Below the pieces are notes generated by a model. The model saw only the letters and a list, made by a program, of their open reading frames with translations. It did no database searches and was not told where the DNA came from. A program made the position numbers and the translations under genes. A DNA stretch of 64,000 nucleotides from the NCBI GenBank assembly GCA_040285825.1, contig JAUPSS010000006.1, positions 434,001-498,000 of the forward strand. The letters are read 5' to 3'. Positions within the stretch are counted from its first letter, which is position 1, and each line of letters opens with the position of its first letter. Positions 9,254 through 57,405 of the stretch are shown in pieces. The stretch comes from Eukaryota sp. TZLM1-RC. Taxonomy: Eukaryota > Protista > Metamonada: BaSk clade.

Positions 9254-9329
9254 AATATTTATGAAAGTGAATGAAATGTGAGGTGAATGTGAAAGAGGGA
9301 GTGATATCTATTTGAGATGAAATTCACAG

Positions 9330-9775
9330 GTGTTGTATTTGATTCAACTTTGAATTCTGATTTTCATTCTCCATCCCCATACCCTTTCGCTTTCGCTATT
9401 GAGGGTTATAGTTCCGGGGACACTTAGCCCTTTCCGATGTGTACTACTGACAGTAGACGCTAACGGTCTCTCCATTTTTCTTTACACCTTCATGATGATC
9501 ATCGCCATTCCGTCGCTTTTCTCTTCAGATTCATACATCTTTCCTTTACTCAGAACTCTGCTCTCAAAAGCTTTCATCCCGATCTCCTCATTTTGAGTCC
9601 CATTCCCAGTTTTTGGTCACCGTCACTCTTTCTCTTCTTGTTTCTGTTTTTGTGGGTGGTAGTGTTACCACTTTCAGCCGTCTGCTATCTGATGCTTTCC
9701 CAATCAATATGCCTCTTACATTAAAAGCTCCACAGTGGGACTCGAACACCAGCGGGTATGTCGGCCGACCTAATC
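9330..9775 (-). repeat. ~440-bp B-box/palindrome element (SINE-like or att-like)
   Basis: GGGACTCGAAC 9737-9747, GTCGGCCGAC 9760-9769; conserved distal core CTTAGCCCTT and GATTTTCATTCTCCATCC shared with 4 other copies. Confidence 0.75.
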
Positions 9776-10029
9776 ATTCAATATCACAATCAAATGATTG
9801 ATAAAGCAGCAACATCACAATACATAATCTATATTCTTGATTAAGAACGGTAACACTAACCAAGTCTCGTAACAAGACCTCGTAGCACCCCTTCCTCAGC
9901 CCGCGGTCGTTCCGAGAAGAAGTCTTTTGAATTCAGCCGCTTCGAACCAAAGCCCGTACCAAAGAACCTCCAAGTTTGCCAAGCTTCCAAGAATTCAAAC
10001 CCCTCCCCTCACTTGCATCGGAAGGAAGT

Positions 10030-10270
10030 CACCAATGTCAAATTAGTAGGTCTTGTTGATTTTAAAGGTAAAGTTATTAGTGGATGTACTCATAATGCAC
10101 CTCTTATTACCTCTGTTAAATCTAGTGTTGATTTTGGTGATGTAGTTGTTGTTGGTTGTCAATTTCAATTTATTGTTGCTACTGATTCTTTTATTGATTT
10201 AGAAACTGTTCTGGTTCTTGGTTCAATTGGTACTGATGAATTCTTTGAACTAATACCAATTTTACTATCA
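10030..10270. repeat. 'VVVGC' module between the B-box element and the 250-bp module
   Basis: GGTAAAGTTATTAGTGGATGTACT...GTTGTTGTTGGTTGTCAAT...GCTACTGATTC; also at ~25110 and ~25400, 41810-41985 (reverse), 47405, 47860, 57770. Confidence 0.8.
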
Positions 10271-10378
10271 AAAATTTAAGTTGAACATTTTATTAAATTT
10301 TTGTTGAATATATTTCCGGCTTAATCGGTTTTACTTACTTTTTTGATCTTTTGATTTTAGTTGTTTTTTGAACACTAC

Positions 10379-10645
10379 AGAGTCTCTACCAAATATTGAG
10401 AGTAATTCTCTTTATTTTGAATCTCTATTAATCAATACATAAACGACTGAGTAATCATCAATCATTCAGTTTTTAACTGTTTGAAGTTGAAAACGGTCAA
10501 GAAACATCTGATTACGTGTGTCTGCATAGTCTACATGTTTTTGGATTTTTGTAGGTTTAATACTTACAACAATTTTATTTAATGAATTAATTTGAGGGTT
10601 CCTTTTTTACCTCAACAAAATTAATTCATTTTTATTTTCTTTTAT
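10379..10645. repeat. Conserved ~250-bp module, copy 2
   Basis: Direct similarity to 880-1140. Confidence 0.9.
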
Positions 10646-11067
10646 TTCTACAACAATTAATAGTGAATGAAATTAAAGCCAGATTAAGTATGAGAATACA
10701 CAATCCAGGTTTATAGAGGTTATGATTTTTCATGCTAGACGTCTATAAAAAATTTCCCCCTGGATGCAAGAATAATTTGGTGTTTCTTTTTAATTGAAGA
10801 TTACGAGAAATTACTCGTAATCATCCCAAGCAAAGTCCTCGATATATTCATTGTAGATATCTTCAGAGATATCACGCTCTTGCATTTCGGCAAGGAAATT
10901 CTCTTCGTTGAATCGACCGTGTTGAATCATTGCAGATATAACGAAATTTCGAAAATCATTATAGAATTTATTTTTTTCAAATAATTGGAATGAAATTAAT
11001 GACGTGACAGACCAAGTGATGATGTGGTAATGCACCGTGAACCATGTGCAGTTGACACATGCACTAC

Positions 11068-11520: not shown

Positions 11521-11589
11521 CTATAAGAATAAAAACATTTATTATTTATTTCATTATTAACAGGCAAGAGAAATATTAACAGGAGATAT

Positions 11590-12010
11590 TATCAGTCCTC
11601 ATCTGAGGAATAATCAACAAGATCACGACGGTCGGCACGGGGTGTCAGGAACCTTGGAGTGGATTGTTTGACCTTCCGAGACATGCTCTCATTTAGGTCA
11701 ACCACAATCAAGGGCATTCTGACCATCCATCACTTGGTCGATGACCTTGTCGACCATTTCAAACGGCATGGTTGTTATCAGTTCGACATTTTGTTGATGA
11801 AATATGAAAGTGAAACTTTCATGCTCACAGCATGTTTCTTTCATTCCCAGCATGAGCTTTTTAACCTTGTGGTTAAATTTTCTATCGATGTTGGATTTTG
11901 CTCTAAAATTAGTTTAATAAAAAAACATACTGACTTGGAGAGGGAGTGGTAACCCCAGAGGGAGAAACAGCTACAGGTGGTTCGCTATTCCCTGGTGGTG
12001 TATTGGGAGC
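11590..12010 (-). pseudogene. Orphan 'RxFNH' family member
   Basis: S/P/T linker, 28-nt intron 11903-11930, then AKSNIDRKFNHKVKKLMLGMK..HESFTFIF..ELITTMPFEMVDKVIDQVM; later frameshift. Confidence 0.7.
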
Positions 12011-12159
12011 AGAGAGAGGAGATTGAGAACTGTTGTGGGATTGAACCACAGACTCTCTGAAAATCGTCCTCCTCACTGGAACTCGGCGAACTATAGTGGT
12101 GTTTCAAAGTCGAACAATGGAGGATGATGATAATGTTGTCGGGATTTGTTAAACAGCTC

Positions 12160-12420
12160 TCTTGACTCGACGGCATCGAAAATATCTTATACGAATCTGT
12201 GATGAGTAGGCTGAGTTTTACATACAACTGGGCGAATACTGTTGATGTTTTCGTAGTCCTTGGCTGTTGAACAATGGGCTTCCAAATGGCCAACATTACA
12301 GGAATACCAGCCTTGGAGCTGTGATAGTTGTGCACTATACGAGAACCTATGGTTATATGAATTGTAGTGATCATACCACTGTCATAATGAACTTCTACGG
12401 GATTAAGAGCACATGGCCAC
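12160..12420 (-). pseudogene. Orphan 'HNYHSSKAGIPVMLAIW' family, copy 2
   Basis: Homologous to 1207-1480 with an intron at the same position. Confidence 0.6.
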
Positions 12421-12692
12421 TTTGTCTAGAATATCTGTAGTCGGGATTTTCCCTGCACCAGCCGAGGTAGAATCTAGGATTTTCGTAATTCAAAACCTTT
12501 TTTTTTGGCTGCTAAAATATCTTGTAGCTTTCGGTTAATATCAGACAATACACTCTGTTCAACGCACTGTTGCTGTCCTGCAATACGTTTTTGAAGAATA
12601 TCGTTTTGTTGAGCGAGTACTTCATTCTGAGTCTGTAAAGTAGATTTACACAGTGCAATTACCTAGTAGTATAAAATCATATAATACATTGT

Positions 12693-12959
12693 TTATTTGT
12701 CCAAGTCTAGGTCGTCTCCATCCATTTCATCACTATCTGCTGCTAAATCTATGTTGGAGTCTGAGTCTGCAGGAGGAACAAATGTAGGAGGGGGACCCAG
12801 TCTGTCAAATAGTTGAGGTTGTTCCTTTTGGAATATCTGAAGATATTCCTCTACCATGGACTGGAAGAAGGAAAAGTCAATGGGTTTGGCAGGGTCAAAT
12901 TTCCCTGGTTGAAGAGTGTAGGAATCTCCCGGGGATTGTTCGTCAGAAGATGATGACAT
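12693..12959 (-). CDS. Small acidic orphan protein (~88 aa)
   Basis: Open copy of the duplicated MSSSS..PGDSY family. Confidence 0.55.
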   Translation of the reverse strand: MSSSSDEQSPGDSYTLQPGKFDPAKPIDFSFFQSMVEEYLQIFQKEQPQLFDRLGPPPTFVPPADSDSNIDLAADSDEMDGDDLDLDK

Positions 12960-15149
12960 TGGATGTTGGAATGTTGGAAGAATGATGGTTTTTACAAAAA
13001 GAATGTGTTTCCTCATATTCAACTGTTTTGCCATGTACTTTGGCACTAAAATAAGTTTTTTGTGTTCTTGCTAAATGTGAAGTCAATTGAAGAACTATTT
13101 CACAAGAACTGTTCTGATCTTCCATCAGTTTTTTCAATTCTGCCATCAGTATTTGCTTCCTTTTGTGATATTTGCTGGTCATTTTTTTTGGAATCGTAAT
13201 TTCTGTCTTAGGAGTTCAGTTCTGATGTGGAAAAGTTCTGAGAGGATAGGCTGGTATCAGTACCAGAACGGAGGCGGAACATGTGTATTTATGTGTATTA
13301 AGTCAGGACACCTTAATTTTTTTATGTTACGGAACTTTTTGAAAATTTGACAACCTTTTAATCTCTTGGTCAAAACTGAAACAATAATACCATGACAAAA
13401 ACTTTTATTGTTATTGTTACAAGACTTTTACTAGTTGAGACAGATGTTAATGTTTAATTTAGCTCTACCCATATTAAATAAAAATTGCTCAGACTGTTGA
13501 AACATAAATAAATATCCATATTGATTTATAACACAATACTGAAAAAGAAATAATTACTACAAAAGTATCTAGTAAAGACATAGTTAAAAGCATAAATCTC
13601 AAAACATTACCTATTTCTATTCATATCATTACAACCAAACACTTCATAAACTACTAATATTCTTGAATCCAATTTATTTTTATCTTTTCACACCAATTTA
13701 GACGTAAATAACTGAGTAATTTTCAATGAGAGGAGAGAGGAAAGTCGGCATCATCAACATAATCAACACAAGAGGAGTTGGTTCACAACACGAGAGGAGA
13801 GCGATTAAACAATTGAAGTTCTCTGCTCGTCGATGTGGTCCGAAAGTTTCCTTATTGATTATATCTCAGTTATCCGACGAGAACAATTGTGAATCAATAG
13901 AAGTAGAATATGAATCATCATATTCATTGTCTAGTTATCCTTCTAAAAAAGTGACCGATTTGCAGACAGATGACATATGCTTAACTGTTACTCCGCATCT
14001 GCATGATCAAAACAACTGTGAGGCTATTTAGCTCAACTACATGTCAAATCTTCGACAGTCGAAGGCCGCCCCTTTAGAAACTATAGAAACTGCTACTGCG
14101 GATATTAGAGACTTTAACATGTTGTAAAGTCGTCTTAACATTGGATTTCAATTGAGTTAGGCAAGCAAAAAAAGGACAAAGTCCTTTTCTATTAATGAAA
14201 TTGCATTTCTGTGCTTGCAGCCAATCATTGAGGTAAATATTGAATGAATTGCTAGAACTAAAGAATTCTCCCATGTAGAAACAAGAGACCTGTCTTGTGG
14301 GCATTCAGGAAGAAATGCAAAATTTGTGAAAGATAAGTAGTAATTGGCGTTGTCCTTTAGAGGTGGATGGGCTTGGAAAAGAACCAGTGCTGATCACGGT
14401 CATAAAAAGATACCATACATCCTGTTCCACTAAAGCTCTTGATGCCAACGGGATGAAGTTGATGAAAAGATAATTCTACTACTTTATCATCAATATTATC
14501 AAGTATGTATAATCATTACACAAATATTTGCATGTTATTGAATTTTTTTTACCCTTATTGTAATTGATGACTTGGTCTTCAACTCTTAACCGTAAAGGAT
14601 TTGATCCATTATACCATTATCATCCTTCGACACATTCAATACTTACTTCGTTCTAATAATGCTTAACAGAGGATGCATATTGTCGGTATGGTATAGGCTT
14701 AACACATATTCTATTATATTCAACAAACGCATATACCGCACAAATGAACAAATAGTTGTTGGAAACGTACCACAACTTTATAAAAACAATGAAAATCATC
14801 AATTGACAACCAATCTTGGCATTACAATAGTATAGCCAGATTTGATACCAAACGACAAATTGATTTTTGAAGAAAAATAATTATCATAGTAATTACTACT
14901 ATATTAGTAATAGTAATAGTATATTTTTATTTTATAGTATTAGTATAGTTAAAACTGGTGTGAAAAGAGAACAAAACAAACAGTGATGTATCCGCATAAC
15001 GTCGAGATGGATGCAAACAAAGACCTTCTATCTACTGAGGATCTGAGCTGAGTTTCTTAATTATTTCTCCTCGAAACAAATTTTGGAGCGCTTATTAGTT
15101 GTTTGCCTAAACTTTTCTTGTTGCGTTTTGTCGATTTACCAGAATTTTC

Positions 15150-15620
15150 CTATTGAACTTCAGAATTTTTTGGTAGGTCATATAGGTTTGTAGCGTTACC
15201 CTCAACAAAGACTGACTCTTGAAATGGTGACCACCATAAAAAATCATGACGGTCACCTTGTCTACTTTCTTTCCAAGTAAGATAATTTAGGTATAACCCA
15301 CGGGGTGTCAAATGCTGTTGAGTGAATTGGTTTACCCTTCTCAACATGGTCTCATTGAGGTCAATCAGATTCATGGGCCATCGACCATTCATTACTTGGT
15401 CGATCACCTTGTCCACCATTTCAAAAGGGATGGTCGTGATCAGTTCATCTCTTTGTTCATCAAAAATGAACATAAAAATTTCATGATCACGGCCTGTTGC
15501 CTTCATATCCTGCTTCAGCTTCTTAACCTTGTGGTTAAATTTGCGACTGATATTGGATTTTGCTCTAAAATTAATTTAAGTAAAAAACAGACTGAGTGGG
15601 AGAAGGAGTAGCGGCCGCAG
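15150..15620 (-). pseudogene. Orphan 'RxFNH' family member (5'-truncated)
   Basis: 28-nt intron 15565-15592, then AKSNISRKFNHKVKKLKQDMKATGRDHEIFMFIFDEQ..WPMNLIDLNET. Confidence 0.7.
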
Positions 15621-15899
15621 AGGCTGAGCTTTTTACCCAACACCAAAGTTTCAATATCAAAATGTAAAATTCTGAGAGTAAATTGTGTTTTGACATTTGA
15701 TGGTGTCATTGAAGGGTTTTTGTATTGAGTCAACGGATTCTCATTAAAAAGTGTTTTTAAACGTTTCAAAGGTGTGCTTAATACATTAGCTCTCCTTTTT
15801 CTGATGGTTTTTTGTACAGAAGAGTATTTATTAATACTAATAATATTATAGTTATAGTATTAATAATATGTATTAATACTAATACATTTATTAATACTA

Positions 15900-16289
15900 C
15901 TTAAAGAAGTCATCCATAAATTGGTACTGTTCTTGAAAAACAGATTTGGTTGATTCATGGCATAGTTAGGCTGTCAGACCATTATATCTTTCTGTTACAT
16001 TAGGACCATGATGTCCAAAGATTTCTTGCAGTAATGCAATATCTTTGTGAAACTCATAATGAGTGAGTCCAAACGATTTCCGCAACGAGTGACTGCTAAC
16101 ATTTTGAGGCACTCCAGCTCTTTGACTGGCTTCTTTCAAATTTTTCCAGACAGTCTTTCGGGTTATTGGCTTGGAATATATCGGTCGTCTTTCCTGGGAC
16201 TTTTCTATAGCTTCGGTCGTATAACAATTGAACGCATCTGGATCCAATGGCTTTAAAAAATTGATCAGTGATGTTGTTAGACGATACAT
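15900..16289 (-). pseudogene. Tyrosine recombinase catalytic C-terminal half
   Basis: HSLRKSFG..HY..KDIALLQEIFGHH.P.VTERY contains H-x-x-R, H and the catalytic Y. Confidence 0.9.
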
Positions 16290-16369
16290 TTCCCTTCTGT
16301 AATTGCTGATATTAGTTTTACACAGTAAACATACATTCTGGTGTTGCGCATTGGATCCTTGGCATTGCT

Positions 16370-19559: not shown

Positions 19560-20345
19560 AAGCCCACACCAGCAAAGAACGTAGACATCGTAGCACCCAT
19601 TCAATTACATTCTTCATTCAGCAAACATGAAGAGAATGCAGAATGTCGAGGACTCTTATGTTCATCAGTAGTTATTTTAGAAATCTTTCAATAAACTGTC
19701 TTTATTAAGTTAAGCTCTTTACAATTTCATTTTACGAGCAACGTTTGGAACTGGCTTTACGTTCGAAGGAATGTATGGTGAATTATACAAGTTTCCAAAA
19801 TTCGAAAATAGTTTTGAGTGATGTAAACAATATGTGTTGAGTTGTTCTCCAAAATACAACAACTACTTCGTTGCAATAATATTTCAGCAGCTTTCGTGGA
19901 CTCTGGGAATCTACTAGGGACCGAGGACATCCGGTTTCAATAATGAAACTAAGCAGAAGTTTAGCTCTCATTACCCAATAAATTGGATGGCAAGAAGTGT
20001 GTTACGCAGATAAGGAATCTAATATGCCTGACAAAATGAATGAGATAAGAGAGTAGTTTGTATGCTACACCACAAAATACAAGATAGGCAACGTTTCGTC
20101 ATCCATGTCTATTAATGCTCCTATCAACTGATTGAATAACTTTTCCACCGTCTGGAAAGATTAAAAAAGAAATACGTTTGTTTATTGATTTGTTAAAAAC
20201 AGCCTGTAACCAGCGACTAAGAGTTGATTGTGAGATGCAGAAGTATTGTGCTATATAAGCCCGTGACCCTAATTTTTTCAGATCCTCCGACCCTGAAGGA
20301 CGCAAGCTTTTGTGAAAACAACAACATGTCGTATGTTTTGATATA
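19560..20345 (-). mobile_element. Deleted remnant of two-gene IS630/Tc1 element
   Basis: HTH IAQYFCISQSTLSRWL; C-terminal LYNSPY (compare FRSPY/YKSPY); convergent plus-strand ORF2 end MKRMQNVEDSYVHQ* at 19671. Confidence 0.6.
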
Positions 20346-20475: not shown

Positions 20476-23400
20476 ACATATTACACTCACATTCACACAC
20501 TTTAAACACTATCAGCATTGTTTTTTAGCTTATTTGACTATACATATTCAAGACCACAGTGATTCGAACACATTCATTTTTCCAACATTATTTTCCAACA
20601 TAAAAGATGAAGAAATTAGTAAAATGAGATAACAAAAATATCAAATTACGTAATATTAATATAATTGGATTAAAAATGTTGTAACCAACACATAGAATTT
20701 GTTTGTAGAAATTAACAAAGATTTATGAAAGAGTTGTATGACTTTTTGAAAAATGTGAGATTTTGAAATAAAATTTCAATTTCTCTATCAAATATTACAA
20801 ACCCTTATAAACCATTTTATACTCGCAAAAGCTTATATAAAACACACATAATTAAGAGGTTTTACAGTTCCATAGTTTATTTTGAAGTTATGTAAAATGA
20901 TAGGGATTATGGTCAATGATAATGAAAATCTACACATTACACTCACATTAACACACTTTAAACACTATCAGCATTGTTTTTTAGCTTATTCGACTATACA
21001 TATTCAAGACCACAGTGATTCGAACACATTCATTTTTTCAACATTTTTCCAACATAAAAGACGAAGAAATTAGTAAAATGAGATAACAAAAATATCACAT
21101 TACGTAACGATGATATCAATAAATTGAGAATATTAAAAACAACACATAAAATTTGTTTGTAGAAATTAACAAGGATTTATGACAGAGTTGTATGACTTTT
21201 TGAAAAATGTGAGATTTTGAAATAAAATTTCAAATTCTCTATCAAATATTACAAACCCTTATAAACCATTTTATACTTGCAAAAGCTTATATAAAACACA
21301 CATAATTAAGAGGTTTTACAGTTCCATAGTTTATTTTGAAGTTATGTAAAATGATAGGGATTATGGTCAATGATAATGAAAATCTACACATTACACTCAC
21401 ATTAACACACTTTAAACACTATCAGCATTGTTGTTTAGCTTATTCGACTATACATATTCAAGACCACAGTGATTCGAACACATTCATTTTTCCAACATTA
21501 TTTTCCAACATAAAAGATGAAGAAATTAGTAAAATGAGATAACAAAAATATCAAATTACGTAACGATGATATCAATAAATTGAGAATGTTAAAAACAACA
21601 CATAAAATTTGTTTGTAGAAATTAAAAAAGATTTATGAAAGAGTTGTATGACTTTTTGAAAAATGTGAGATTTTGAAATAAAATTTCAATTTCTCTATCA
21701 AATATTACAAACTCTTATAAACCATTTTATACTCGCAAAAGCTTATATAAAACACATATAATTAAGAGGTTTTACAGTTCCATAGTTTATTTTGAAGTTA
21801 TGTAAAATGATAGGAATTATGGTCAATGATAATGAAAATCTACTCATTACACTCACATTCACACACACTTTAAACACTATCAGCATTGTTGTTTAGCTTA
21901 TTTGACTATACATATTCAAGACCACAGTGATTCGAACACATTCATTTTTCCAACATTATTTTCCAACATAAAAGATGAAGAAATTAGTAAAATGAGATAA
22001 CAAAAATATCACATTACGAAATATTAATATAACTGGATTAAAAATGTTGTAACCAACACATAAAATTTGTTTGTAGAAATTAACAAAGATTTATGAAAGA
22101 GTTGTATGACTTTTTGAAAAATGTGAGATTTTGAAATAAAATTTCAAATTCTCTATCAAATATTACAAACTCTTATATACCATTTTATACTCCCAAAAGC
22201 TTATATAATACACACATAATTAAGAGGTTTTACATTTCCATAGTTTATTTTGAAGTTATGTAAAATGATAGGGATTATGGTCAATGATAATGAAAATCTA
22301 CACATTACACTCACATTAACACACTTTAAACACTATCAGCATTGTTTTTTAGCTTATTCGAATACATATTCAAGACCACAGTGATTCGAACACATTCATT
22401 TTTCCAACATTATTTTCCAACATAAAAGATGAAGAAATTAGTAAAATGAGATAACATAAATATCAAATTACGTAACGATGATATCAATAAATTGAGAATG
22501 TTAAAAACAACACATAAAATTTGTTTGTAGAAATTAACAAAGATTTATGAAAGAGTTGTATGACTTTTTGAAAAATGTGAGATTTTGAAATAAAATTTCA
22601 AATTCTCTATCAAATATTACAAACTCTTATATACCATTTTATACTCCCAAAAGCTTATATAATACACACATAATTAAGAGGTTTTACATTTCCATAGTTT
22701 ATTTTGAAGTTATGTAAAATGATAGGGATTATGGTCAATGATAATGAAAATCTACACATTACACTCACATTAACACACTTTAAACACTATCAGCATTGTT
22801 TTTTAGCTTATTCGACTATACATATTCAAGACCACAGTGATTCGAACACATTCATTTTTCCAACATTATTTTCCAACATAAAAGATGAAGAAATTAGTAA
22901 AATGAGATAACAAAAATATCACATTACGAAATATTAATATAACTGGATTAAAAATGTTGTAACCAACACATAAAATTTGTTTGTAGAAATTAACAAAGAT
23001 TTATGAAAGAGTTGTATGACTTTTTGAAAAATGTGAGATTTTGAAATAAAATTTCAAATTCTCTATCAAATATTACAAACTCTTATATACCATTTTATAC
23101 TCCCAAAAGCTTATATAATACACACATAATTAAGAGGTTTTACATTTCCATAGTTTATTTTGAAGTTATGTAAAATGATAGGGATTATGGTCAATGATAA
23201 TGAAAATCTACACATTACACTCACATTAACACACTTTAAACACTATCAGCATTGTTTTTTAGCTTATTCGAATACATATTCAAGACCACAGTGATTCGAA
23301 CACATTCATTTTTCCAACATTATTTTCCAACATAAAAGATGAAGAAATTAGTAAAATGAGATAACATAAATATCAAATTACGTAACGATGATATCAATAA

Positions 23401-23634
23401 ATTGAGAATGTTAAAAACAACACATAAAAATTTGTTTGTAGAAATTAACAAAGATTTATGAAAGAGTTGTATGACTTTTTGAAAAATGTGAGATTTTGAA
23501 ATAAAATTTCAAATTCTCTATCAAATATTACAAACTCTTATATACCATTTTATACTCGCAAAAGCTTATATAATACACACATAATTAAGAGGTTTTACAT
23601 TTCCATAGTTTATTTTGAAGTTATGTAAAATGAT
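20476..23634. repeat. ~455-bp tandem satellite, about 7 units
   Basis: Marker CCACAGTGATTCGAACAC at 20554, 21010, 21464, 21922, 22376, 22832, 23286; fragment at ~17915-18015. Confidence 0.97.
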
Positions 23635-24577: not shown

Positions 24578-24619
24578 ACGCATTATGTTAGTTGAAAGTT
24601 CCATTTATTGAAATGAAAA

Positions 24620-25060
24620 ACACACTTATCTATTTATCCATCTCCAATCCCTTTTGTTTCATTGTACCGAGCCCCCTGGAGTCGGGCATGCTTAGCCATT
24701 CCCCTCGTATTCCGAGATTGCATGACGCTCTCTTCTTCCGGCGTCAGCGCCCCATCGATACTCATCGTTCTTGCTTTTGATGTCTGCCACAGCGTTGATG
24801 TCGTTGTTCTTGCTTACGATCGTTTATTTCTTAGCTCTTTCTTTAGTTTTTCTTGTTCTTACTTGTTGTTCAGAGCAACCCTCACCAAGCCACTCAGTAT
24901 CTCTTCACTTCCACGTTTTTTGTCATTCTCAACTCCATCATCTTTTCGTTGAATCTTTTGCAACATTTGTGCTTTATCTTTTCCTGTGTTTTTTCCTTCA
25001 TTGGGACTCGAACTCGTGACTCTTTTCATTTTTTTGGAGTTGGTGAGATTCGAACCCAGC
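24620..25060 (-). repeat. Divergent B-box element with two B-boxes
   Basis: GGGCATGCTTAGCCATTCCCC core at ~24685; GGGACTCGAAC 25003-25013 and GAGATTCGAAC 25045-25055. Confidence 0.6.
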
Positions 25061-25638
25061 ACCTCAGTCTTGTCCAATTTTGATGAACCTGGAATTTGAC
25101 CAATGTCCAATGTCTAAACTTTAGTTTCAGTTGATTTTAATGGTAATGTTATTGATGGATGCTATTTACCTCTTATTACTCTTGCTGAATCCATTGTTGA
25201 GTTTGATGATTTAGTTGTTGTTGGTTGTTCAACTTAATCTTTTGCTACTGATTAAACCATTGAATTAAACTATGTGGGTTTGCTACTCATGACCATTTTA
25301 TATTAATCAAAATTAATTGGATTATGATTAATGATGTGTTTCTGAATCTTGTTATGGTTTATTTATCAATGTAGATGACTCAATTGTGGATTTTACCAAT
25401 ATTAAAACTTTAGGTCTAGTTGATGCTGAAGGTAAAGTTATTAGTGGATGTACTAATAATTTTTCTCATTACCCTTGTTAAATCTAATGTTGATCCTGTA
25501 CTTGTTGTTTGTTGTTTGTTGTCAATCTCAATCTATTAATGCTACTTATTCTACTACTGATTTCGAAACTGTTGTTGTTGGTGGTTCAACTTGGATGATT
25601 ACCTTGAATTAACCAAAACTATTTGATTTTTTAAATTT

Positions 25639-25960
25639 AGAGTCTCTACCAAATATTGAGAGTAATTCTCTTTGTTTAGAATCTCTATTAATAAATGCAT
25701 AAATGGCTGAGTAATCATCAATCATTCAGTTTTTAACTGTTTGAAGTTGATTACGGTCAAGAAAGATCTGATTACGTGTGTCTGTATAGTCTACATGTTT
25801 TTGGATCTTTGTAGGTTTAATACTTACAGTAACTTCAGTTATGAATTAATTTGAGGGTTTCTTTTTTTCACCTCAACATGATTAATTCATTTTTAATTCT
25901 ATTATTTATTTCTACATTTAATATAGGTTTAATTATGTGATGACTAAAGTAGGATCGATC
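25639..25960. repeat. Conserved ~250-bp module, copy 3 (preceded by two VVVGC modules)
   Basis: Direct similarity to copy 1, including the ATGACTAAAG.AGG.TCGAT tail. Confidence 0.9.
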
Positions 25961-31990: not shown

Positions 31991-32559
31991 AATTCTCAGC
32001 TCCCACCCACCCTGATCAACCTTCTATCACCGATTTGTCTTCCCTACGTTGTTGTTGGCGGTTGTAATGTGACTTTACACACCTGTATACCTTCGTGTAG
32101 TGTATGACAACCATTATGGTACTGTTGTATGTGTAGTTTTCCTGTCGTTATCATTGTAATAAACAAAAGATGTTTCCTTCCTTTGTATCAACTACAAAAT
32201 AAACCCAAAATACAAATTCTCTATTTTAGACTCTACATTAATGTACCACTGAACGTACCATAAATTCATTTTCCAACACAAAAACATAGATTGCCCATAT
32301 AAATAGTTGAGCTGTTGATATGATGAAAAGAAGGCAAATTGGCAATGTTGGAATTCATTAGAAGTGAAGATGGAAATAGGAAATGGTAAAATGAAAAGTG
32401 GTTGGTTTTTGCAATAATCCCTACTGTGCTTTGCACCCCAGGTCCTCAATTTTCATTTCACTCACACCCAAATCAATGACATTTAAAAAGCTTTTTTCGT
32501 CTCCCCAGACACCCGTAGTGTTCCCCAAAGCACCCATATTGTCTCCAAAAAGTTCTCCC

Positions 32560-33984
32560 AAAACACTATTAAGCCTGGCTATAGCCTAGCAATCCTGAAG
32601 AGCTTAAAAACTTGGCGTCTTATTTTTTCGCAAAAGTTCCAGACGTTGAGGACATTGCACATTTAGAGCAATAAATTTATTCATTTTTAACCCAAACACT
32701 ACAAAACAAGTGACTAAATAAATGATTAATTAAGTTGATAAAAGTAGATTCAAGTAAAAACTCACTCAATGTATTTTGATAGAGAACGTTGGTAAAAGTA
32801 TGGACTTTTATAAACTTCATCATCCACCCAACCTGCATGATTGAATAGTCCAGCACAATTTTTCAATGTCAAATTTTTGAGGCTGTGAGTCATAATATGC
32901 ATGCTTTGATTTTGGTAAGAATGATAACAAATTTCCTGAACTTTTGCTCTCCAATCTTTAATATAAGCCTCTATTGGATTCATTTCAGGACAATAGGGTG
33001 GTAAAATCAGTTGTTTTATACCAATTGCGTTGAGTCCCTTTGATATACTGTCATGCTGATGAATTCGACATCCATCCATAATAAAAATTAATCTGTGATG
33101 ATTTCGACTTTTGACAATTGATTCAATGAGATCAGATAAATAATTGACAAATTCAGATCTGGAAAAATGTCCCTCTTTCGAGTGACAAAATAAATAACCA
33201 TTAACCGTTATGGCTACAATAAAGTTTACTTGCCGTTCTTTGATCTGATTTCGAAGCTCAACAACTGGTGTCCCTTTCGGTGACCTGCCATAAACCCTGG
33301 AGCTCCACTCTGAAATTCAATTCATCAATGAAGACAAGCTGTTTCTGAATGATAATTCCGAATTTACGACGAAAATAATTAGAAAAACTGTGAATGAGTT
33401 CTGCTTTGGCTTTTTGCACAACCATGCGTGCTTTTTTACGGTGAAATTTCTTTTCTCTACTAAAAATCTATGTATGGTTGAAACCGATACTTGTTTATTT
33501 GAATGAATTTCCAAAATAGTCTTGATCTCTTTTAAAAAAAGAAGGGGACGGGTGTTCAATAAATGGTCCAGAAATTCACCATCTGCATTTGTCAAAACAC
33601 ATCTTGAAATTGTTGATTTATTGTTGGGTTTAAAAGATCATGTACCCACTTCGAAATTGTCGTTTGGTGAACCCAAAACAGTTGACCAACTTCGGTTTGG
33701 GTTCGACCAAGGAAAAACACTGTATAAAGTGCCCTAACTCGAGTATCTTCACTCGTATGATATCTAAGGGACGAGAGAGCTGATGATTGAGACTTTTCTA
33801 TAGAAATGAGTGCATTACGTAGAGAAGGAAGATTGTCATGGGATAAAAGAAGATCGAAGGTGTATGGCATTGATGGGGAGGCGTGAGAGGAGGTTGGTTG
33901 TGAAATGGGTGGATGGATGTTGCGAATTTGAAAATAAGCACCCGAGTTGCAAATCACAGTATTCAACCCAGGCGAATCATACAG
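32560..33984 (-). mobile_element. Two-gene IS630/Tc1 element, frameshifted transposase (32762-33870)
   Basis: MPYTFDLLL..SEDTRVRALY, MDGCRIH, LPPYCPEMNPIE, YKSPY; TIR reverse-complement CTGTATGATTCGCCTGGGTTGAATA ending 33984; convergent ORF2 end FFAKVPDVEDIAHLEQ* at 32674. Confidence 0.85.
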
Positions 33985-34428
33985 ATCAACTTTGTAATTC
34001 TGATTTTCATTCTCCATCCCGATACCCTTTCGCTTTCGCTATTGAGGTTTATAGTTCCGGGCACACTTAGCCCTTCCCGTCGTCCACTCTTAACGCTAGA
34101 CGCTAACGGTCCATGACATCGGTATTTTCCTTGTATCATTCTTGATGATGATTCTCCTTTCTGTTGCATAACCACTGATGGTACATCTCCCCTCTCAAAT
34201 CTCTTCCCTTAAACATAAGACCATCGTCCCTCTTTTGCGATTACCCATCCCAATTTCCTTGTTTGGACTTTGTTGAATGGATACATTACCCACACAGGCT
34301 CTCTCGAACTCTTTTCTGCTGTTTCTGGTTCACCAGTTCCGTTGTTCATCTACCTTTGAAATTCTTTCTGAAATTTGAACTCATCCGGTGGGACTCGAAC
34401 CCAGACAGATGTGTCGGCCGACATATCT
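33985..34428 (-). repeat. B-box/palindrome element
   Basis: Distal ~120 bp matches 9340-9465; GGGACTCGAAC 34390-34400; extended hairpin AGATGTGTCGG-CCGACATATCT 34407-34428. Confidence 0.75.
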
Positions 34429-34710
34429 AACAGATGATACATCATTAGTTGAGCCGACATGATTTATTTTTCTGTTTTGGTTCCTATTCTTGGACTGTTT
34501 TATATCACCGCTCTTTCACTTAAAAAAGAACAATTATTTGAAAATATTCTGTAATTTAAATTTTGTCGGATCATCAATGTTTTTTAACTATCTCTTTATT
34601 CAACTGTAATACTATTGTTTTAATATTCTACTTTTAATTACAGTTAAACCGATTGATGAGGCTTTGTTTTTAATTTATATCGTTGTGTTATATTATTTAC
34701 TTATTATTTT

Positions 34711-34978
34711 AGAGTTTCTATCAAATATTGAGAGTAATTCTCTTTATTTTGAGTCTCTAATCCTAAATACATAAACGACTGAGTAATCATCATTCATTCA
34801 GTTTTTAACTGTTTGAGGATGATTACGGTCAAGAAAGATCTGATTACGTGTGTCTGTATAGTCTACATGTTTTTGGATTTTTTTGTAGGTTTTATACTTA
34901 CAACAATTTTATTTAATGAATTAATTTGAGGTTTTCTTTTTTTACCTCAACAAAATTAATTTATTTTTATTTTCTTTA
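34711..34978. repeat. Conserved ~250-bp module, copy 4
   Basis: Direct similarity. Confidence 0.9.
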
Positions 34979-35418
34979 TTTAGGGCTAGTAAACCACTTT
35001 CCTTTCTTTTTGGCTCGGTCGAACTTGTATAGGATTGTATATTGTTGTTTTTTGGTTTGACCAACCGAAATAACTGTTTCTTCCGTCAATTGTTTTCGTA
35101 CAGCCTTACGGGAATTTTCTGCTATGTAATTTGTAAGAACTGGAAAAAACTCCAACTTTTCCCCTTTGTACATTTCACTTTTTGATTTTGACAAATCTGA
35201 AGGTTTTCTACCCGGAGAAAACAGTGCATCATTAAAAGCATAATCCTTCAGCAATCGTAGGTGCTGTTCAATATATGGAAAAACTTTAGTTGGAATGACG
35301 ACCTTCCGCCATTTGTCGGTTTTTTTCTCTTGTAAATTTATCTTTTTTTGGAATGAGATTCTGTTTGATGTTTTGCTATTTACCACATCTTTTACTTTTA
35401 CAGCCAATATATCGGATT
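34976..35418 (-). pseudogene. Tyrosine recombinase, first half of catalytic domain
   Basis: SDILAVKVKDV..INLQEKKTDKWRKVVI (Box I tail and patch II KT); partial duplicates at 35655-35835 and ~58440-58600. Confidence 0.65.
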
Positions 35419-46492: not shown

Positions 46493-46696
46493 CGACTGGC
46501 CAGAAGAGGAGGGGCCAAGAGGATCAATGCTCTCATTTTCGACGCAACCCGTGAGTCCTTAAAGACTTTCCTAAATTATATATTAAGAGATTCAGTCACG
46601 TACATGAAACATGCAAATCGAAAAACATTGGTGGCCATGGATGTTGTTTTTGCTCTCAAACGTCATGGAAGAGTATGGTATGGATATGGGAATTAG
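46493..46696 (+). pseudogene. H4: Divergent histone H4 histone fold lacking canonical N-terminal tail
   Basis: [67 protein letters not shown]. Confidence 0.9.
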
Positions 46697-46703
46697 ATTC
46701 TGT

Positions 46704-47150
46704 GTGTTGTATTTGATTCAACTTTGAATTCTGATTTTCATTCTCCATCCCCATACCCTTTCGCTTTCGCTATTGAGGGTTATAGTTCCGGGGACACTTA
46801 GCCCTTCCCGTTGTCTACTACTGACAGTAGACGCTAACGGTCTCTCCCTTTTTCTTTGCACCTTCATGATGATCATCGCCATTCCGTCGCTTTTCTCTTC
46901 AGATTCCTACATCTTTCCCTTACTCAGAACTCTGCGCTCAAAAGCTTTCATCCTGATCTCCTCATTTTGAGTCCCATTCCGAGTTTTTGGTCACCGTCAC
47001 TCTTTCTATTCTTGTTTCTGTTTCTTGTGGGTGGGTGTGTTACCACTTTCAGCCGTCTGCTATCTGATGCTTTCCCAATCAATATGCGACTTATATTAAG
47101 AGGCCCACAGTGAGACTCGAACACCAGCGGGTATGTCGGCCGACCTAATC
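46704..47150 (-). repeat. B-box/palindrome element (empty, transposon-free allele)
   Basis: Near-identical to 9330-9775; 46540-47860 duplicates 7300-7465 plus 9330-10485. Confidence 0.85.
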
Positions 47151-47753
47151 ATTCAATATCACAATCAAATGATTGATAAAGCAGCAACATCACAATACAT
47201 AATCTATATTCTTGATTAAGAACGGTAACACTAACCAAGTCTCGTAACAAGACCACGTAGCACCCCTTCCTCAGCCCGCGGTCGTTCCGAGAAGAAGTCT
47301 TTTGAATTCAGCCGCTTCGAACCAAAGCCCGTACCAAAGAACCTCCAAGTTTGCCAAGCTTCCAAGAATTTAAACCCCTCCCCTCACTTGCATTGGAAGG
47401 AAGTCACCAATGTCAAATTAGTAGGTCTTGTTGATTTTAAAGGTAAAGTTATTAGTGGATGTACTCATAATGCACCTCTTATTACCTCTGTTAAATCTAG
47501 TGTTGATTTTGGTGATGTAGTTGTTGTTGGTTGTCGATCTCAATCTATTGTTGCTACTGATTCTTTTATTGATTTAGAAACTGTTCTGGTTCTTGGTTCA
47601 ATTGGTACTGATGAATACTTTGAACTAAAACTAATTTTACTATCAAAAATTTAAGTTGAACATTTTATTAAGTTTTTGTTGAATATATTTCCGGCTTAAT
47701 CGGTTTTACTTACTTTTTTGATCTTTTGATTTTAGTTGTTTTTTGAATACTAC

Positions 47754-48378
47754 AGAGTCTCTACCAAATATTGAGAGTAATTCTCTTTATTTTGAATCTC
47801 TAATTATAACTACATAAACGACTGAGTAATCATCAATCATTCAGTTTTTAACTGTTTGAATCTCAATCTATTGTTGCTACTGATTCTTTTATTGATTTAG
47901 AAAATGTTCTTGTTCATGATTCAACTGTCACAGATGATTACTGTGAATTTTTTAAATTTAGAGTTTCTACCAAATATTGAGAGTAATTCTCTTTATTTTG
48001 AGTCTCTATTAATAAATACATAAACGATTGAACAATCACAAATCATTCAGTTTTTAACTGTTTGAAGTTGATTATGGTCATGAAAGATCTGTTTACATGT
48101 GTCTGTATAGTCTACATGTTTTTGGATCTTTGTAGGTCTAATACTAATAACATTTTTATTTCTGAATTAATTGGAGGGTTTCTTGTCACGTTATCATCAA
48201 ACTCGACTGTACCTCGCAGGCAAAGATACTCCCTCTTCTTCTTGTATCCATCGCCTATGGGGAGCATCACCAATGAATCTGTGTGCTCAAGCTGCGAATT
48301 AAGAAGATTTTCGGCTTGGATTAGATTCCAACATCTGAGCGACGAAAAATAGAATACTTACCTCACCGATTATTTGAT
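47754..48378. repeat. Partial and full 250-bp modules with extension shared with 58006-58424
   Basis: Direct similarity; the extension holds a putative 27-nt minus-strand intron 48335-48361 (GTAAGT..CTCAG). Confidence 0.85.
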
Positions 48379-49025
48379 AGGAAACCGATACGAAACCAAT
48401 ACGGAATAGTTTTTTCATATTGGACGTAAAGTTCGTCATCAGCATTAATATCTTTCGCAGCAAAATAAGCAATCAATGGGATAAGTTACACCATCAAAAG
48501 ATCGTTCCAAGTCGATGGCATAAACATTGATCTTTTCCTCGGATGGGGTGTTGACCATCCAGCCAGGACCATATTCCCAGAGTCGTGCCCTGGCATCAAT
48601 GAAATAATGGTCGTCACAGATTGACCAGGAGAGAGAATATTGGTTGTCTGGGATTGACCTTTGGCGGAGCTGCATGGTTTTTTTGTCAACGAGTTCACCA
48701 CCATACCAAAGAATGAGGGTACGTTTGCGGATAAACTCTTGAGCAAAAGGACCGATGCCAATGTTGGAACAAATGGATTCCTTGGGGTATACTTTGACCG
48801 CACACATCGGTAAGTAATACCCCTTGGAATTGTTATTGAGAGGAGGAGGAGACATAGGGGGATACACTCCTTTAAAACTATGGGCATCATACAGTGGCAG
48901 AGAACGGAGCTGATTGGTGTCCTTGTACGGGGAGGCTGAAATTAAGGCAGTATGGCCAAGGTAATGGTTTACAAAGGCATCCTGCGAGAGCGTGGGTTCT
49001 TGGCAAATGTTGCCCACCACCCATG
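48370..49025 (-). pseudogene. SET-domain lysine methyltransferase, one frameshift near 48482
   Basis: GIGPFAQEFIRKRTLILWYGGE..YFIDA..GWMVN..INV; shifted frame gives YFAAKDINADDELYVQY. Confidence 0.85.
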
Positions 49026-49350
49026 GCACTTTTCATCTGTGAGACCAATGTATCTTTCGGTTACACGCGGACCATGATGGCCAAAGATTTCTTGCAATAA
49101 TGCAATATTTTTGTGAAACTCATAATGATTGAGTCCAAATGTTTTTCTCAACGAATGACTGCCAACATTTTGAGGCACTCCAGCTCTTTGACCAGCTTCT
49201 TTCAAATTTTTCCAGGCAGTCTTTCTGGTTATTGGTCTGGAATAAATAGGCCTTCCTTCTCTAGATTTCGGCACGGATACAGTGGTATAGAAAACATATG
49301 CATCGGGGTCGAGTGGTTTCAAATAATTAATTAGAAACCTTTTCATTGGG
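49020..49350 (-). pseudogene. Tyrosine recombinase catalytic C-terminal half
   Basis: VGSHSLRKTFGLNHYEFHKNIALLQEIFGHHGPRVTERYIG. Confidence 0.9.
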
Positions 49351-50349
49351 GCACGAACTTTTTCCAAACGGACTGTTTAATCATTTCTATTTTTGGTTTC
49401 AGTAGCCTGAAACTCCAACAATTTGTTTTTTTGATGACAACACACTCTGGATACTCGAAGTTGGAGCAAATTTCCGATCGATCGGATTGACAAATGAATT
49501 AAATTTCTCAATAGAGCATATAAACAATTTAACATTGTTCATTTAAAAAGAGTAATTCAATTTTAAACTTCACTTTTTGATTTTGAATTTGTGATATGGT
49601 GAACGCACATCCATTGCCTTTCATGGATTCATTGACCATAATGCTATTTATCAGTAATAAGTGGACTTAATAACCAATGACAATTATAATTGACATCATG
49701 TCAAATCACAGTGATATTGTTGTGAATGTGTTATATGGTGCAATATAAATATTAGTTAATTTGAAAATGTTTTAACAACATCTTATTTAAAAATATAAAT
49801 TTAATTTATTCACAAAATAATTCATCAAATAGTCACATACACTTACGCATTTTGCATCAATTGCCGTTGTGTTTTCAAAAACAGGGCAGTAAGGTACAGA
49901 GATGATCCATACATATGTACTACTTCCTTTGACTGTCAATAGCAAAGGAATGTATCAATTCTGATGATACACTCATAAATGTAACAATATAAACCTTAAT
50001 TGTTTTTGTATTCGACAGTTCGATAGAGCATCAATTGAAATTGTTTAGGCATCCTATTACAATATTTACGTTTACTGTTCTATATCAAAATCTTTCATCG
50101 TTAAATTTGTTTTCTTTGATTTGAAATGATTTAGCTAGAAACGGTTTATTTCAATTATTGTAACATACATCAAAGAACTCCTCATTGTCGAGCTTACCTT
50201 ACTATTTTCGTCGCCAGCAGACCAAATTGGTTGTAATTCCTTTAATCTGTTGAAGCCGAAGAATTTAACACTAAGTTGTACATATTTGTGCAAGAGCACG
50301 AGCACTGTTTTTACGTTGAAAAAGCATGGGGTGTAGGAATATAAAATGT

Positions 50350-53620: not shown

Positions 53621-55119
53621 TGTTTATCAATAATTACCAATTGTTCAGTATTTGATCATTTAGTATATCTTTGCAAGATCTATAACAATATGTGACATGT
53701 GCTACAACATCTCGTTAGGTATGAATCTCGTTAGGATGAACATGTGATTGGAGAAAACCAATTTCTTGTTTCATGCCTCCTAAAACTACCAAAACGACTT
53801 CAACTCCCCCTCTTAAGAAGGCTAATGTTAACCAATCCAATAAAGAAGCAGTCTCTGAATCTGTATCTGAAACTGTGGCTGAACCCAACTTCTGCCACTT
53901 GCAAAAAGATAAGTTGTTAGTCAGTGATAAACAACTTGATTTTTCAAAATATCTGAAACGTAAAAATCGGCTAGTAACCAGAAGCACCACTGATTCGATG
54001 TATATCATTGAAGAAGTCAAAGACTCGTTATTTGTCAGCACTAATCTCCATGATGGTCCTGCTCAAGAATCAGATATCATTGATATTGTTAAATCTTAAT
54101 ATTCTTAAATCTCCAAACCATCCATATAAATTTTTCTCAAAATTAGAAATCTTAATTGGAATTGTGAAATTGTTAATCTCATTTGGCTTCTTCATCACTA
54201 TTAATCACACATTGAGAATTCCATATGACTTGGATGGACAGTCTCCTCTCTATACTAATTGTATTAAAATTCTTGACCACTTGTTGAAAATAATTATGGT
54301 TCTGGGTCTTTTTCTCATTTCAGAAGTAAAAAGTTTGTTTGATGAAAATAAAGAGAGAGAACTAGGGCGACCACCTCCGAAACGGAAGAACCAAAAGAAG
54401 TAACTAAATTAAAGGAAGAAGTTATTCCAAATCAACCAACTTTTCCAGAATAAATGATTGAAATTGTTTCAGGACAAGTCAAAGAAAATATTACTCTACG
54501 TTCTTATGGTGAAGAAAAACAGTATTGACTAAGCAAAAATTGAAAAGAAGAATGAGAGACAAGACTAGATATTTTGAGAAATTAAATTGTAAAAATTGTG
54601 GAACTGTTGCTCATTTATTTGAACCTCCTAACCTTTTTTGTTCAAAATGTCTTTCTATATCAACTAGAAAATAATTTTAAACAACTTATTTTTTTTATTG
54701 TAAAAGAGTTTACCGAAAAGGGTTTACTGAAAAATGTTTTATCAAGGACCTTTTGGTTCGTTAAAAGAAGATGAGATAAAATTACTTTCCAAATGGGATA
54801 TTAAAGTCATTGACGTTATTGAAATAAATGTTTTCTACACTCCACTGATTTATTACAATTTTCCTTTTTTTACTGAATATTATTTATTGAATAGATTATA
54901 TGCCATTCATCATAAAACCATAATTAGTAACTCCAAATTAAGGTCATTTAAAGGAAACTCTCTACAAGAATATGATAAAACAAAAATTCAAGATGGTTTT
55001 GCCTATTATTGTGATGGCACTCCACTAGGAGATTTCACTAAAAAAGAGGCAGAAATGATTGTTTTGGAAATGATTCCAAAACATTTGCATTTCAGGTTAA
55101 AGTTGCTCCTTAATAATTA

Positions 55120-56340
55120 GTTGCTCTTTAATTACGGCCAGTTACTTCGACAAATACATTAAGGCCAAAGAGCAACAGGAATTCAGGGCAACTACTATGG
55201 AAGAATTGAAACATGCCAACCAGCAGCTCACTCTGGCTGATAGTCTTTGGGAAAAATGGTTGGACCTGATAAATAAGAAGCAAGCGGAAATTACAATTCT
55301 GCCAGATGTGGTGGTAGGCTATCTTGGAAACGTCAACTTAGATGACCAGATTTGTCCTGAGGTGGCTGAAGAAATTGTCCAGTACACCTCGACCAAAGTA
55401 AAGCAACTAAAATGCGAAACGGACGAACTGTTTAGTGCTCTAGAAAACAAACTATATCGTGAGCTGGATGTCTTTATTCGATTCACTTTGTTACGTCCCC
55501 ATTCAAAAGCTTCCTTGAGTCCGTCAGCAGAAACACTTTTGAAAACAGTCAGAGTTCAAGAGAACACCCAATATACCGATTAATAATTTTTACATATCAA
55601 CTATTAAATAAACTAATTTATAAACTAATTTAATCTAAAAAACTTTGCCACTGTTCAGATTGTGGCCCATGAAGATAAGGAGATTTGTATGTACGAAAAT
55701 GTCTCCACCCACTGTGGGCAAAAAGTTCTCTGCAATCAAAATTCATAAGATTGCGAAGAACAAGCTGTAGTAACTGCAGCTGGAAGGTGGATAGATGAAA
55801 AAGAGAGAATTCTCTCACCTTTCTGCGTAAAACCCTCAAAGAAGGCTTCTATTGGATTACATTCCGGCGAATAAGGCGGAAATATGACATATCGAACACC
55901 TGAAAGTCGGAATGCTTTAGAGATATTGTTGGACTTATGTATGTTACAACCGTCCAGTACCACAACAGAATTTGCCCCACCAATTGTCGACAGTACCCTG
56001 TGTCTAAACAGGTCTGCAAGAAAACTAGTAAATTGACGGGTATTGAAATGTCCTTCTTGTATGTGATACAACACTACGTTATTCATATCCATAGCAACAC
56101 AAAGACTTATCTGCTTTTCTTTAAAAGTTGGTCATTCAAATCTAGTGTTCTGTCCCTTTCGGTTGCATGTAACTTCAATGTCCTGATATCAACTCCAGAC
56201 AGAAGCAGATCGAATGTAGCGCCCATTGATGTCCAAAGAGACGTTGAAAAGTGAGAAAAGAGCAAAGGTGAATCGGCAGATGAATTAGGTAGGGTTAAAA
56301 GTGAATTTGGGGTGTTATTCAACCCAGGTGAATCACCCAG
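55120..56340 (-). mobile_element. Two-gene IS630/Tc1 element, internally deleted transposase (55630-56226)
   Basis: MGATFDLLLSG, VLDGCNIHK, PPYSPECNPIE, YKSPYLHG; TIR reverse-complement CTGGGTGATTCACCTGGGTTGAATAA ending 56340. Confidence 0.85.
55197..55583 (+). CDS. ORF2 of two-gene IS630/Tc1 element
   Basis: Homologous to 8769..9122 and convergent with the transposase. Confidence 0.7.
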   Translation: MEELKHANQQLTLADSLWEKWLDLINKKQAEITILPDVVVGYLGNVNLDDQICPEVAEEIVQYTSTKVKQLKCETDELFSALENKLYRELDVFIRFTLLRPHSKASLSPSAETLLKTVRVQENTQYTD

Positions 56341-56341
56341 G

Positions 56342-56946
56342 TAATGTTAGAATTACTGAACTAGTTCGGCCGAACGTTCGGCACCTACTGATAGGTTCGG
56401 TTAGTTTCGGCATCTCGTTTTGATTCATTAATATCAAAACGATGTTTATCTCCTCCTTCCTTATACTATTACACTCACTATCAACCAACAAAGTAAACTT
56501 TTATTCAGAAAGTTCTACAACATCTAAATCTAGGTCATTAACCTAGGACAGTGTTTATATCCTTGACAGAAATGGTGGATAATTGAATACATAAGGCATA
56601 TCCAGCTCTATACTCCTTAATGAAATGGGAGGAAAAGCGACGGGCTGAACTTTTTAGCATTTTACTGCAGCAGCGGCACTGTGAAGTAATATTTTTGGAC
56701 ACTTTATCGTAATTAACGTTGTCCAGAAGTTTGTAAACAGGGTGCTTTGGCATTGAAGAAACCTGATGTAAAGAAGGGGATTTATGTATGAATACAGATT
56801 TTTAAACAATGAAATCTATTGTAGTAGTTGAAATAGGGATTTGGGAAAACATCTTTAAACAAAACTGTGTTGACACGTGTAAATGAACAAAAACTAGTTC
56901 GGTCGAACGTTCGGAAGGGTTGCGAACGTTCGGAATTCTAACATTG
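56342..56946 (-). mobile_element. Non-autonomous hAT-type element with BED-finger remnant
   Basis: TIRs (T/C)AATGTTAGAATT; 8-bp TSD CACCCAGG (56334-56341, 56947-56954); subterminal CCGAACGTTCGG-type palindromes; ORF 56538..56753 KHPVY..C..C.K..RF.SH. Confidence 0.85.
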
Positions 56947-56954
56947 CACCCAGG

Positions 56955-57405
56955 TATACCTTGGATGATTTTCATTTTCATTCCTCATCCTCAAACCCTT
57001 TTTCCTATGGTACCGAAGCTTCCTTGACCCGACATGCTTAACCCTTCCCCTTGTTGACACAAATTGGTCAACGCTATCCTTTTCCGGTGTCAGCACTTTT
57101 CCGATTCTGCTTTTAATCTCTCTCCATGAATCTGGCTCGTTTCTTTTTGACTCCTTACTCTCATATCTTTTCGTCTTTATCCACCTTTTGGTTAGAAGAT
57201 CGGCGAAATAGGCATTGCTTTCGTCTGTTCCGTCTTTTGTTTTCTTGGCACCACCATCACTTCTCTCTCTCATAGCGTACTTCTCTGTGTCTTTTGTCAT
57301 CTCAGTGATGCGTCATTTTGGTATGTCCCCATCTATCAGAAATCAACCTGGATATACAAGTTACACCCTGGGACTCGAACCTGAACAGATGTGTCGGCCG
57401 ATCTA
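56955..57405 (-). repeat. Divergent B-box/palindrome element
   Basis: CATGCTTAACCCTTCCCC core; GGGACTCGAAC 57370-57380; GTCGGCCGA 57393-57401. Confidence 0.7.

Follow-up and report, generated by a model that had tools for sequence, protein, structure and literature searches.

Canonical Tc1/mariner transposons carry a single transposase open reading frame (ORF) and duplicate a TA dinucleotide at their target (PMC2874221). The TBE elements of the ciliate Oxytricha (PMC4724952) combine a Tc1/mariner-type transposase with accessory ORFs, one of them reversed, for three ORFs in all, and have telomeric terminal repeats and a 3-bp duplication of a non-TA target (ANT). Among DNA transposons tied to a multicopy repeat, Dada (PMC3706591) uses an unrelated transposase to enter a fixed base within small-RNA genes, with 6-7-bp duplications, and Pokey (PMC4912750) inserts elsewhere too. 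The retroelements TRE5-A and Tf1, positioned by host factors, and the DNA transposons Mu and P insert a short, variable distance upstream of promoters, and targeting near transcription start sites (TSS) is known for Mu and P (PMC7337890). Here we describe IS630/Tc1-like elements, foremost a young one designated element A, that end beside a B-box-bearing repeat in 64,000 nucleotides of Eukaryota sp. TZLM1-RC (assembly GCA_040285825.1, contig JAUPSS010000006.1, forward-strand positions 434,001 to 498,000; this whole stretch is called the window). The anchor, a tract near one end of the repeat, is a true hot spot and not the product of one ancestral event; on balance, a soft promoter-proximal hot spot, rather than sequence-directed homing, best explains the data. 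We take the strain name to denote Skoliomonas litria, a soda-lake metamonad flagellate. On that assumption, the genome is 31.9 Mb in size and 55.4% repetitive (PMC11316075); the window has 34% GC and is rich in repeats. Nine S. litria loci were compared besides the window (L001, L005 and so on are locus labels), with L005 and L009 being other stretches of the window's own contig.

The elements share with DD34E members of the IS630-Tc1-mariner group the DDE_3 domain, the DD34E spacing, short terminal inverted repeats, a 2-bp duplication and a cut-and-paste anatomy, but they differ in using dinucleotides beyond TA and in having a conserved, convergent second ORF (ORF2). Their best-scoring named relatives all come from Skoliomonas genomes. 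The nearest precedent is found in the ciliate TBE elements, with a comparable transposase, a reversed accessory ORF and a non-TA target, whereas the elements described here have two ORFs, non-telomeric ends and a 2-bp duplication, and ORF2 shows no similarity to TBE proteins in any search.

Element A (7466..9329, plus strand; 1864 bp) has the termini CTGTG...CACAG and is flanked by a GT duplication at 7464-7465 and 9330-9331. Its terminal inverted repeats match at 16 of 25 positions, and the ends are set by multi-copy alignment with six other copies and by an empty site. The transposase (7560..8657, plus strand) is an intact DD34E protein of 365 aa that matches Pfam DDE_3 (E=1e-25, 90.7 bits against a cut-off of 28.6), with 34 residues separating the second D from the E in the alignment; HTH_32 and HTH_33 match its N-terminus below their curated cut-offs. 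It is 98% identical to proteins of TZLM1-RC and clusters with six of them. ORF2 (8769..9253, minus strand) is convergent with the transposase and is broken by a 313-bp deletion with a frameshift; the intact form in family A, found in L001, has 265 aa. The left flank of element A holds a histone H4-like 3' fragment (7301..7456, plus strand), which is duplicated at 46540-46700, immediately ahead of a further copy of the repeat (copy E; empty site and repeat at 46704..47860, plus strand) that is 97.0% identical to the flank of A. The preliminary description had called this 46.7-kb copy empty, and it is indeed the exact empty site of A, since a single GT (46704-46705) sits at the insertion point. 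Because A differs from its genomic sister copies by 1.2% and its flank differs from copy E by 3.0%, A must have inserted after the A/E duplication. The six A copies fetched beyond the window are spread over three other contigs and are 89-99% identical to A. One of them has been filled with nested hAT, IS630 and LTR-retrotransposon sequence over about 7 kb (L006:11528-18855), so that of its right end only the last 25 bp are left; in another (L002:11770), the right end lacks the terminal AG and the AC duplication is apparently intact.

The repeat consists, in order, of an anchor tract with a core, a variable middle, a minus-strand B-box motif and a 270-bp module that is common genome-wide. On the plus strand of the window it occurs as copy A (9343..10652; anchor tract 9359-9398, B-box 9737-9747 as read on the minus strand, conserved 270-bp module 10379-10652), copy B (33985..34981; anchor 34002-34019, B-box 34390-34400), copy C (56954..58230; anchor 56967-56990, B-box 57370-57380), copy E and a diverged fifth copy of D type (24618..25916) that the preliminary description did not include. 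Exact copies of the anchor occur, among the sequences searched, on this contig only. The repeat may begin with a CTGTG transposon end of its own, as two copies suggest; their intervening bases are unrelated, and no matching terminus is found at the far end.

Element A ends 29 bp from the anchor of copy A. At copy B, the end at 33984, which lies 17 bp from the anchor, had been credited to a transposase-bearing element; it belongs instead to a non-coding element of about 365 bp, B0 (32083..33984, minus strand), whose IS630-type end is flush with the repeat boundary. The transposase-bearing element B (32424..33959, minus strand; 1536 bp) is nested within B0 at a TA 24 bp inside its end and terminates at 33959, 42 bp from the anchor. 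Its terminal repeats match at 19 of 25 positions, TA flanks both ends, and a copy of the B family in L003 terminates at the same point; on these grounds a single element spanning 32083-33984 was replaced by B nested in B0. The transposase of B (32762..33870, minus strand) is frameshifted. The far end of B0 at 32083 is tentative, with a terminal match of only 6 bp and AC/AT flanks, and the end's own C-rich tract follows once B is removed. At copy C, the remnant of element C (55101..56340, minus strand) retains its left end at 56340 and has lost its far end; it comprises a transposase remnant (55630-56226) with about 510 bp deleted and the C-terminal part of ORF2 (55101-55583, plus strand). Between this end and the repeat lies a nested, non-coding element of 605 bp (56342..56946, unstranded) with short terminal repeats and further copies in L006. 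Its 8-bp duplication (56334-56341 and 56947-56954) comprises the last seven bases of C and one flank base; on the strength of these features it is classed as hAT-like, and, being non-coding, is named no further. The distance of the C junction (56340/56953) from the anchor is 13 or 19 bp. All three distances given in the preliminary description are confirmed. Where nested elements were removed, junctions were spliced in silico for display and local comparison alone.

In a diverged repeat copy, the anchor-equivalent has the end of a fourth IS630 family about 5 bp away (L009:11985), on the ORF2 side of that element. That locus was fetched for sharing the contig of the window, not for an anchor, and is in this sense unselected. 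The four IS630-type ends (A, B0, C and the L009 family) all lie within 30 bp of an anchor, in four diverged repeat subtypes. This amounts to 4 of about 7 independent anchors where 0.2-0.3% is expected per anchor, with P about 1e-9 to 1e-10 under a uniform null outside which chromatin and look-elsewhere effects fall. Both element ends are used at anchors. Also within about 50 bp of anchors are element B and the hAT-like element, nested at the same junctions as the B0 and C ends, and a LINE-like 3' end (24066-24577) that lies about 50 bp from the anchor of the D-type copy, ahead of which another repeat end is found as well. Local hopping, a known property of Tc1/mariner elements (PMC2874221), may also contribute to the density of ends seen on this contig. 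In two other places, L005:1624-1715 and L009:9755-9846, a common 92-bp segment with a C-rich tract adjoins an IS630 left end at a TA (L005) or lies upstream of another IS630 element (L009), and is a possible second hot spot. A short IS630-like fragment (20186-20254, minus strand) has no anchor beside it.

Two accounts of this clustering are very unlikely. According to the first, proposed in the preliminary description, a site-directed transposon inserts at a fixed distance, some 410-430 bp, from the B-box, perhaps by way of ORF2, a TFIIIC-type factor or an RNA. All three transposase-bearing elements of the window do end 13-42 bp from an anchor, and the uniform null is rejected. However, none of the six other A copies flanks an anchor, and their flanks are unrelated, which is the outcome that the preliminary description had itself named as fatal to its proposal. 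The L001 copy has a truncated stretch of the 270-bp module, the repeat's other end, at a distance of 20 bp. Across the nine other loci, about 18 stretches of IS630 transposase were found, of which about 16 lie elsewhere and two adjoin an anchor, one of these being the duplicate of C in L005. Distances also vary: element ends are 345-431 bp from the B-box and 61, 81, 83, 93 and 106 bp from the core motif, with a positional scatter of 45 bp. For family A, strict site specificity is refuted, and as a general account of the hot spot it is scarcely tenable. Dada likewise offers no close parallel, given that positions here vary and most copies lie elsewhere; in the latter respect Pokey is more alike.

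The second account supposes one ancestral insertion followed by duplication, inversion and divergence. The B and C junctions each have one segmental duplicate at 97-99% on the same contig, that of B at L009:17013-17673 (98.9%) and that of C together with repeat copy C in L005 (97%), and the B0 and C ends fall on the same base. To this extent the account holds, but A is younger than the duplication that gave copies A and E, and it is the opposite end of this element that faces the anchor. In a tree built on the catalytic piece of the transposase, for which the broken or frameshifted B and C proteins entered as separate pieces (as in the searches), A and C are sisters (96/89 support) in opposite orientation, in agreement with the preliminary description, which had seen in them the closest kin. 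Element B is of a different lineage and groups with elements of two other species (98/89 and 95/90), and the L009 element represents another family. The original argument that at least two insertions were independent is upheld. The 25-bp B0 end (33960-33984) is 22/25 alike to the left end of C, whereas the adjoining repeats are 62% alike (P about 0.004), so B0 and C are unlikely to represent one old event. A single ancestral insertion is refuted as the whole story; it covers only the duplicates and possibly the B0/C pair. IS630-type insertions beside the repeat end number at least two, and probably four, that are independent.

A further alternative reverses the sequence of arrival at the B0, C and L009 junctions, such that the repeat joined an existing transposon end, or an adjacent deletion by the transposase fused the two, leaving A as the only clean later insertion. 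In keeping with this, the 5' boundary of the repeat is identical against three unrelated flanks, the B0 and C ends abut it exactly, and C lacks a matching far end with a clean duplication, none was found for the L009 element and the one proposed for B0 is doubtful. Still, A shows that insertion in the ordinary order occurs here, no target duplication is seen around the repeat, and a bias for this spot would be required all the same. We consider this alternative unlikely.

The anchor tracts themselves, at the 5' boundary of the repeat, are rich in C over G, with a skew of 0.53-0.86. Comparable values precede genes in this genome: the mean skew is 0.44 in the 40 nucleotides before host ATGs and 0.38-1.0 before element genes, against a background of 0 in which 4% reach 0.6 or more. 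From this composition, the anchor most likely acts as a core promoter for RNA polymerase II (Pol II), directed into the repeat. The proposed mechanism builds on that reading. The elements are cut-and-paste DD34E transposons of a Skoliomonas clade, and their dispersal and target duplications show that they enter many sites of unrelated sequence, with 2 bp duplicated each time. An anchor acting as a Pol II core promoter through its C-rich tract would leave an open, nucleosome-poor gap upstream, and transpososomes favouring such gaps would strike it repeatedly, giving rise to the A, B0, C and L009-family insertions; element B and the hAT-like element would have used the same open spot. Segmental duplication on this contig, evident in the near-identical junctions, later multiplied some of them. 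Other elements, too, have insertions crowded within their outermost 7-25 bp, on the outer side of their own C-rich tracts, and a preference for open DNA upstream of promoters would account for these as well.

With the ATG taken as a proxy for the Pol II start site, some copies away from the anchor lie 39-105 bp upstream of start codons. For instance, one A copy away from the repeat stops 39 bp ahead of a Puf6/CPL-type gene, and another has a DP/E2F gene 92 bp downstream of its end. Two of six A copies fall within 110 bp of the ATG of a Pfam-recognised host gene (P about 0.008, host-only null), and when any called ATG is admitted, five of nine elements end within 110 bp, compared with 7.7% expected (P about 3e-4). 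The enrichment on the promoter side is suggestive, not proven. Several observations weigh against a promoter-proximal hot spot. The 110-bp threshold was chosen post hoc and the numbers are small; of the five 'genes' that follow such ends, two are open to doubt, one of them a retroelement fragment; and a C-skew scan of the A-family flanks is not clearly above random. The promoter status of the anchor rests on composition, and copy A has no ORF after its anchor. At the repeat boundary, the B0 and C ends coincide to the base, a precision beyond what open chromatin by itself would predict, and the Tc1-type element Minos showed no TSS enrichment (PMC7337890). The resemblance to TRE5-A, Tf1, Mu and P lies in the short, variable distance upstream of a promoter; these belong to other enzyme classes, their tethering by host factors is demonstrated where that of the present elements would be conjectural, and no tRNA gene is present here.

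Soft targeting of this particular repeat is another possibility, in which insertion nearby would be raised by contact of ORF2 or the transposase with a host factor on it, TFIIIC at the B-box or a factor on the conserved core, and most insertions occur elsewhere, in the manner of Pokey. That four diverged repeat subtypes each have an independent IS630-type end within 30 bp, the L009 example being unselected, would fit such a scheme, as would the preservation of the B-box motif where the remaining repeat is only 40-50% alike, and the conservation across the clade of an ORF2 with a predicted beta-grasp fold of interaction type. Set against this are a B-box spacing that varies over 86 bp, B-boxes of other subtypes in L007 that, where readable, have no element end upstream, the sharing of the spot by a hAT-like element without ORF2, and the E-values above 0.1 of all ORF2 fold matches. 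We regard soft targeting of the repeat as rather unlikely. Positioning by Pol III of the TRE5/Ty3 type also fits poorly: ARAGORN reports no tRNA at the B-box, the repeat and B-box region match no Rfam family, and the B-box is 345-431 bp away rather than at a narrow fixed distance. For the anchor core and the B-box region, the consensus folds are weak (-2.4 and -4.5 kcal/mol) with little covariation, so a guide or structured RNA is unsupported. Further B-box motifs occur at window positions 45, 542, 19159, 25003 and 25046, and in L007, L009 and L001. All eight that were scanned in the window are on one strand and have different upstream modules, the motif being conserved and its neighbours not. 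Two other candidates for the repeat were rejected. A conserved reading frame through the anchor is interrupted by stops in different frames among copies, and a 120-aa ORF called at 56938-57300 has its own duplicate as its sole cluster mate and no Pfam match; and what might be taken for a regular tandem array is a mosaic of short duplicated blocks.

The target dinucleotides set these elements apart. All five family A copies that retain intact ends on both sides are flanked there by GT or AC, and two more have it on the left. GT and AC together make up 10.7% of dinucleotides. Family A thus prefers GT/AC rather than TA, and it is not filed as canonical Tc1/mariner because the duplication is not TA. 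Two GEM-RC1 copies that are 98.9% identical have TT/TT and GC/GC duplications, and a second family in L001 has AA/AA. TA/TA is found only in B and its relative in strain RCL. The terminal repeats of A and B all begin with CTG. The right end of the element in L008 lies at about 13398, not at about 11640.

ORF2 is present in A and C as well as in four to five further families, from three species, with 20-32% identity across families. A homologue search, covering proteins of 0.55-1.75 times the query length, returned a second A copy only and none outside the clade. There is no Pfam match and no PDB sequence match, and scans of metagenomes and viruses gave no match. The structural model (mean pLDDT 74, pTM 0.48, from 8 sequences) has a predicted N-terminal beta-grasp-like domain plus helices. 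The best fold matches of that domain fall largely among PB1, Ras-association and ubiquitin-like domains, and none has an E-value of 0.1 or below. No nuclease fold was matched, unlike the second ORF of Tc1/mariner elements carrying Fanzor/TnpB, which is a RuvC-type nuclease. ORF2 may plausibly act as an adaptor. In a broader and more doubtful scenario, the elements would form an undescribed IS630/Tc1 branch in which the TA requirement was lost and retuned by family, and ORF2, through its beta-grasp domain and long helix, would tether the transpososome to promoter-bound machinery, with the repeat end as the strongest landing site of a promoter-targeting Tc1-type transposon. The IS630/Tc1 variant itself, in which the 2-bp duplications are not TA and a second gene is conserved, is new; the literature consulted, of incomplete coverage and without Repbase, gives no account of Skoliomonas transposons or of a GT-duplicating family of Tc1 type.

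Within the window, blocks that are 95-99% alike and shuffled in order link 11658-16355 and 55626-59348 with L005, and are the result of recent segmental duplication and rearrangement. A possible satellite is formed by about seven tandem copies of a 454-bp AT-rich unit (20476-23635; 95% alike), with an inverted copy at 30512-31029 and a piece in L009. A JAB/MPN-domain gene (40051-40623, plus strand) has parts duplicated, inverted and in scrambled order at 26637-27486. A tyrosine recombinase fragment (48969-49367, minus strand; Pfam Phage_integrase, E=9e-12) could derive from a Crypton- or DIRS-type element. The LINE-like 3' ends at 6261-7037 and 24066-24577 resemble ORFs beside reverse transcriptases in other loci and are of the restriction-like endonuclease type as judged by motif, with no Pfam match. 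By eye, a 180-aa ORF (5621-6163, minus strand) has a PD-(D/E)xK-like motif, with a sub-threshold and probably spurious Pfam match, and ORFs at 29598-30248 and 60974-61423 (minus strand) look like the C-terminal part of an LTR-retrotransposon integrase, with no Pfam match.

Loss of the site-directed claim removes the most striking reading of this locus. What is retained bears on the family more widely. The TA duplication serves as a hallmark of Tc1/mariner elements and as a criterion for their annotation, yet near-identical copies here vary among GT/AC, TT, GC and AA beside sisters that use TA. Outside the ciliates, there are few parallels for a DD34E element that carries a conserved orphan ORF2. 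The bias toward promoters, if true, would extend targeting like that of Mu and P to an enzyme of Tc1 type. The clade is a natural set in which to locate the transposase residues that fix target choice, and family A keeps intact transposases.

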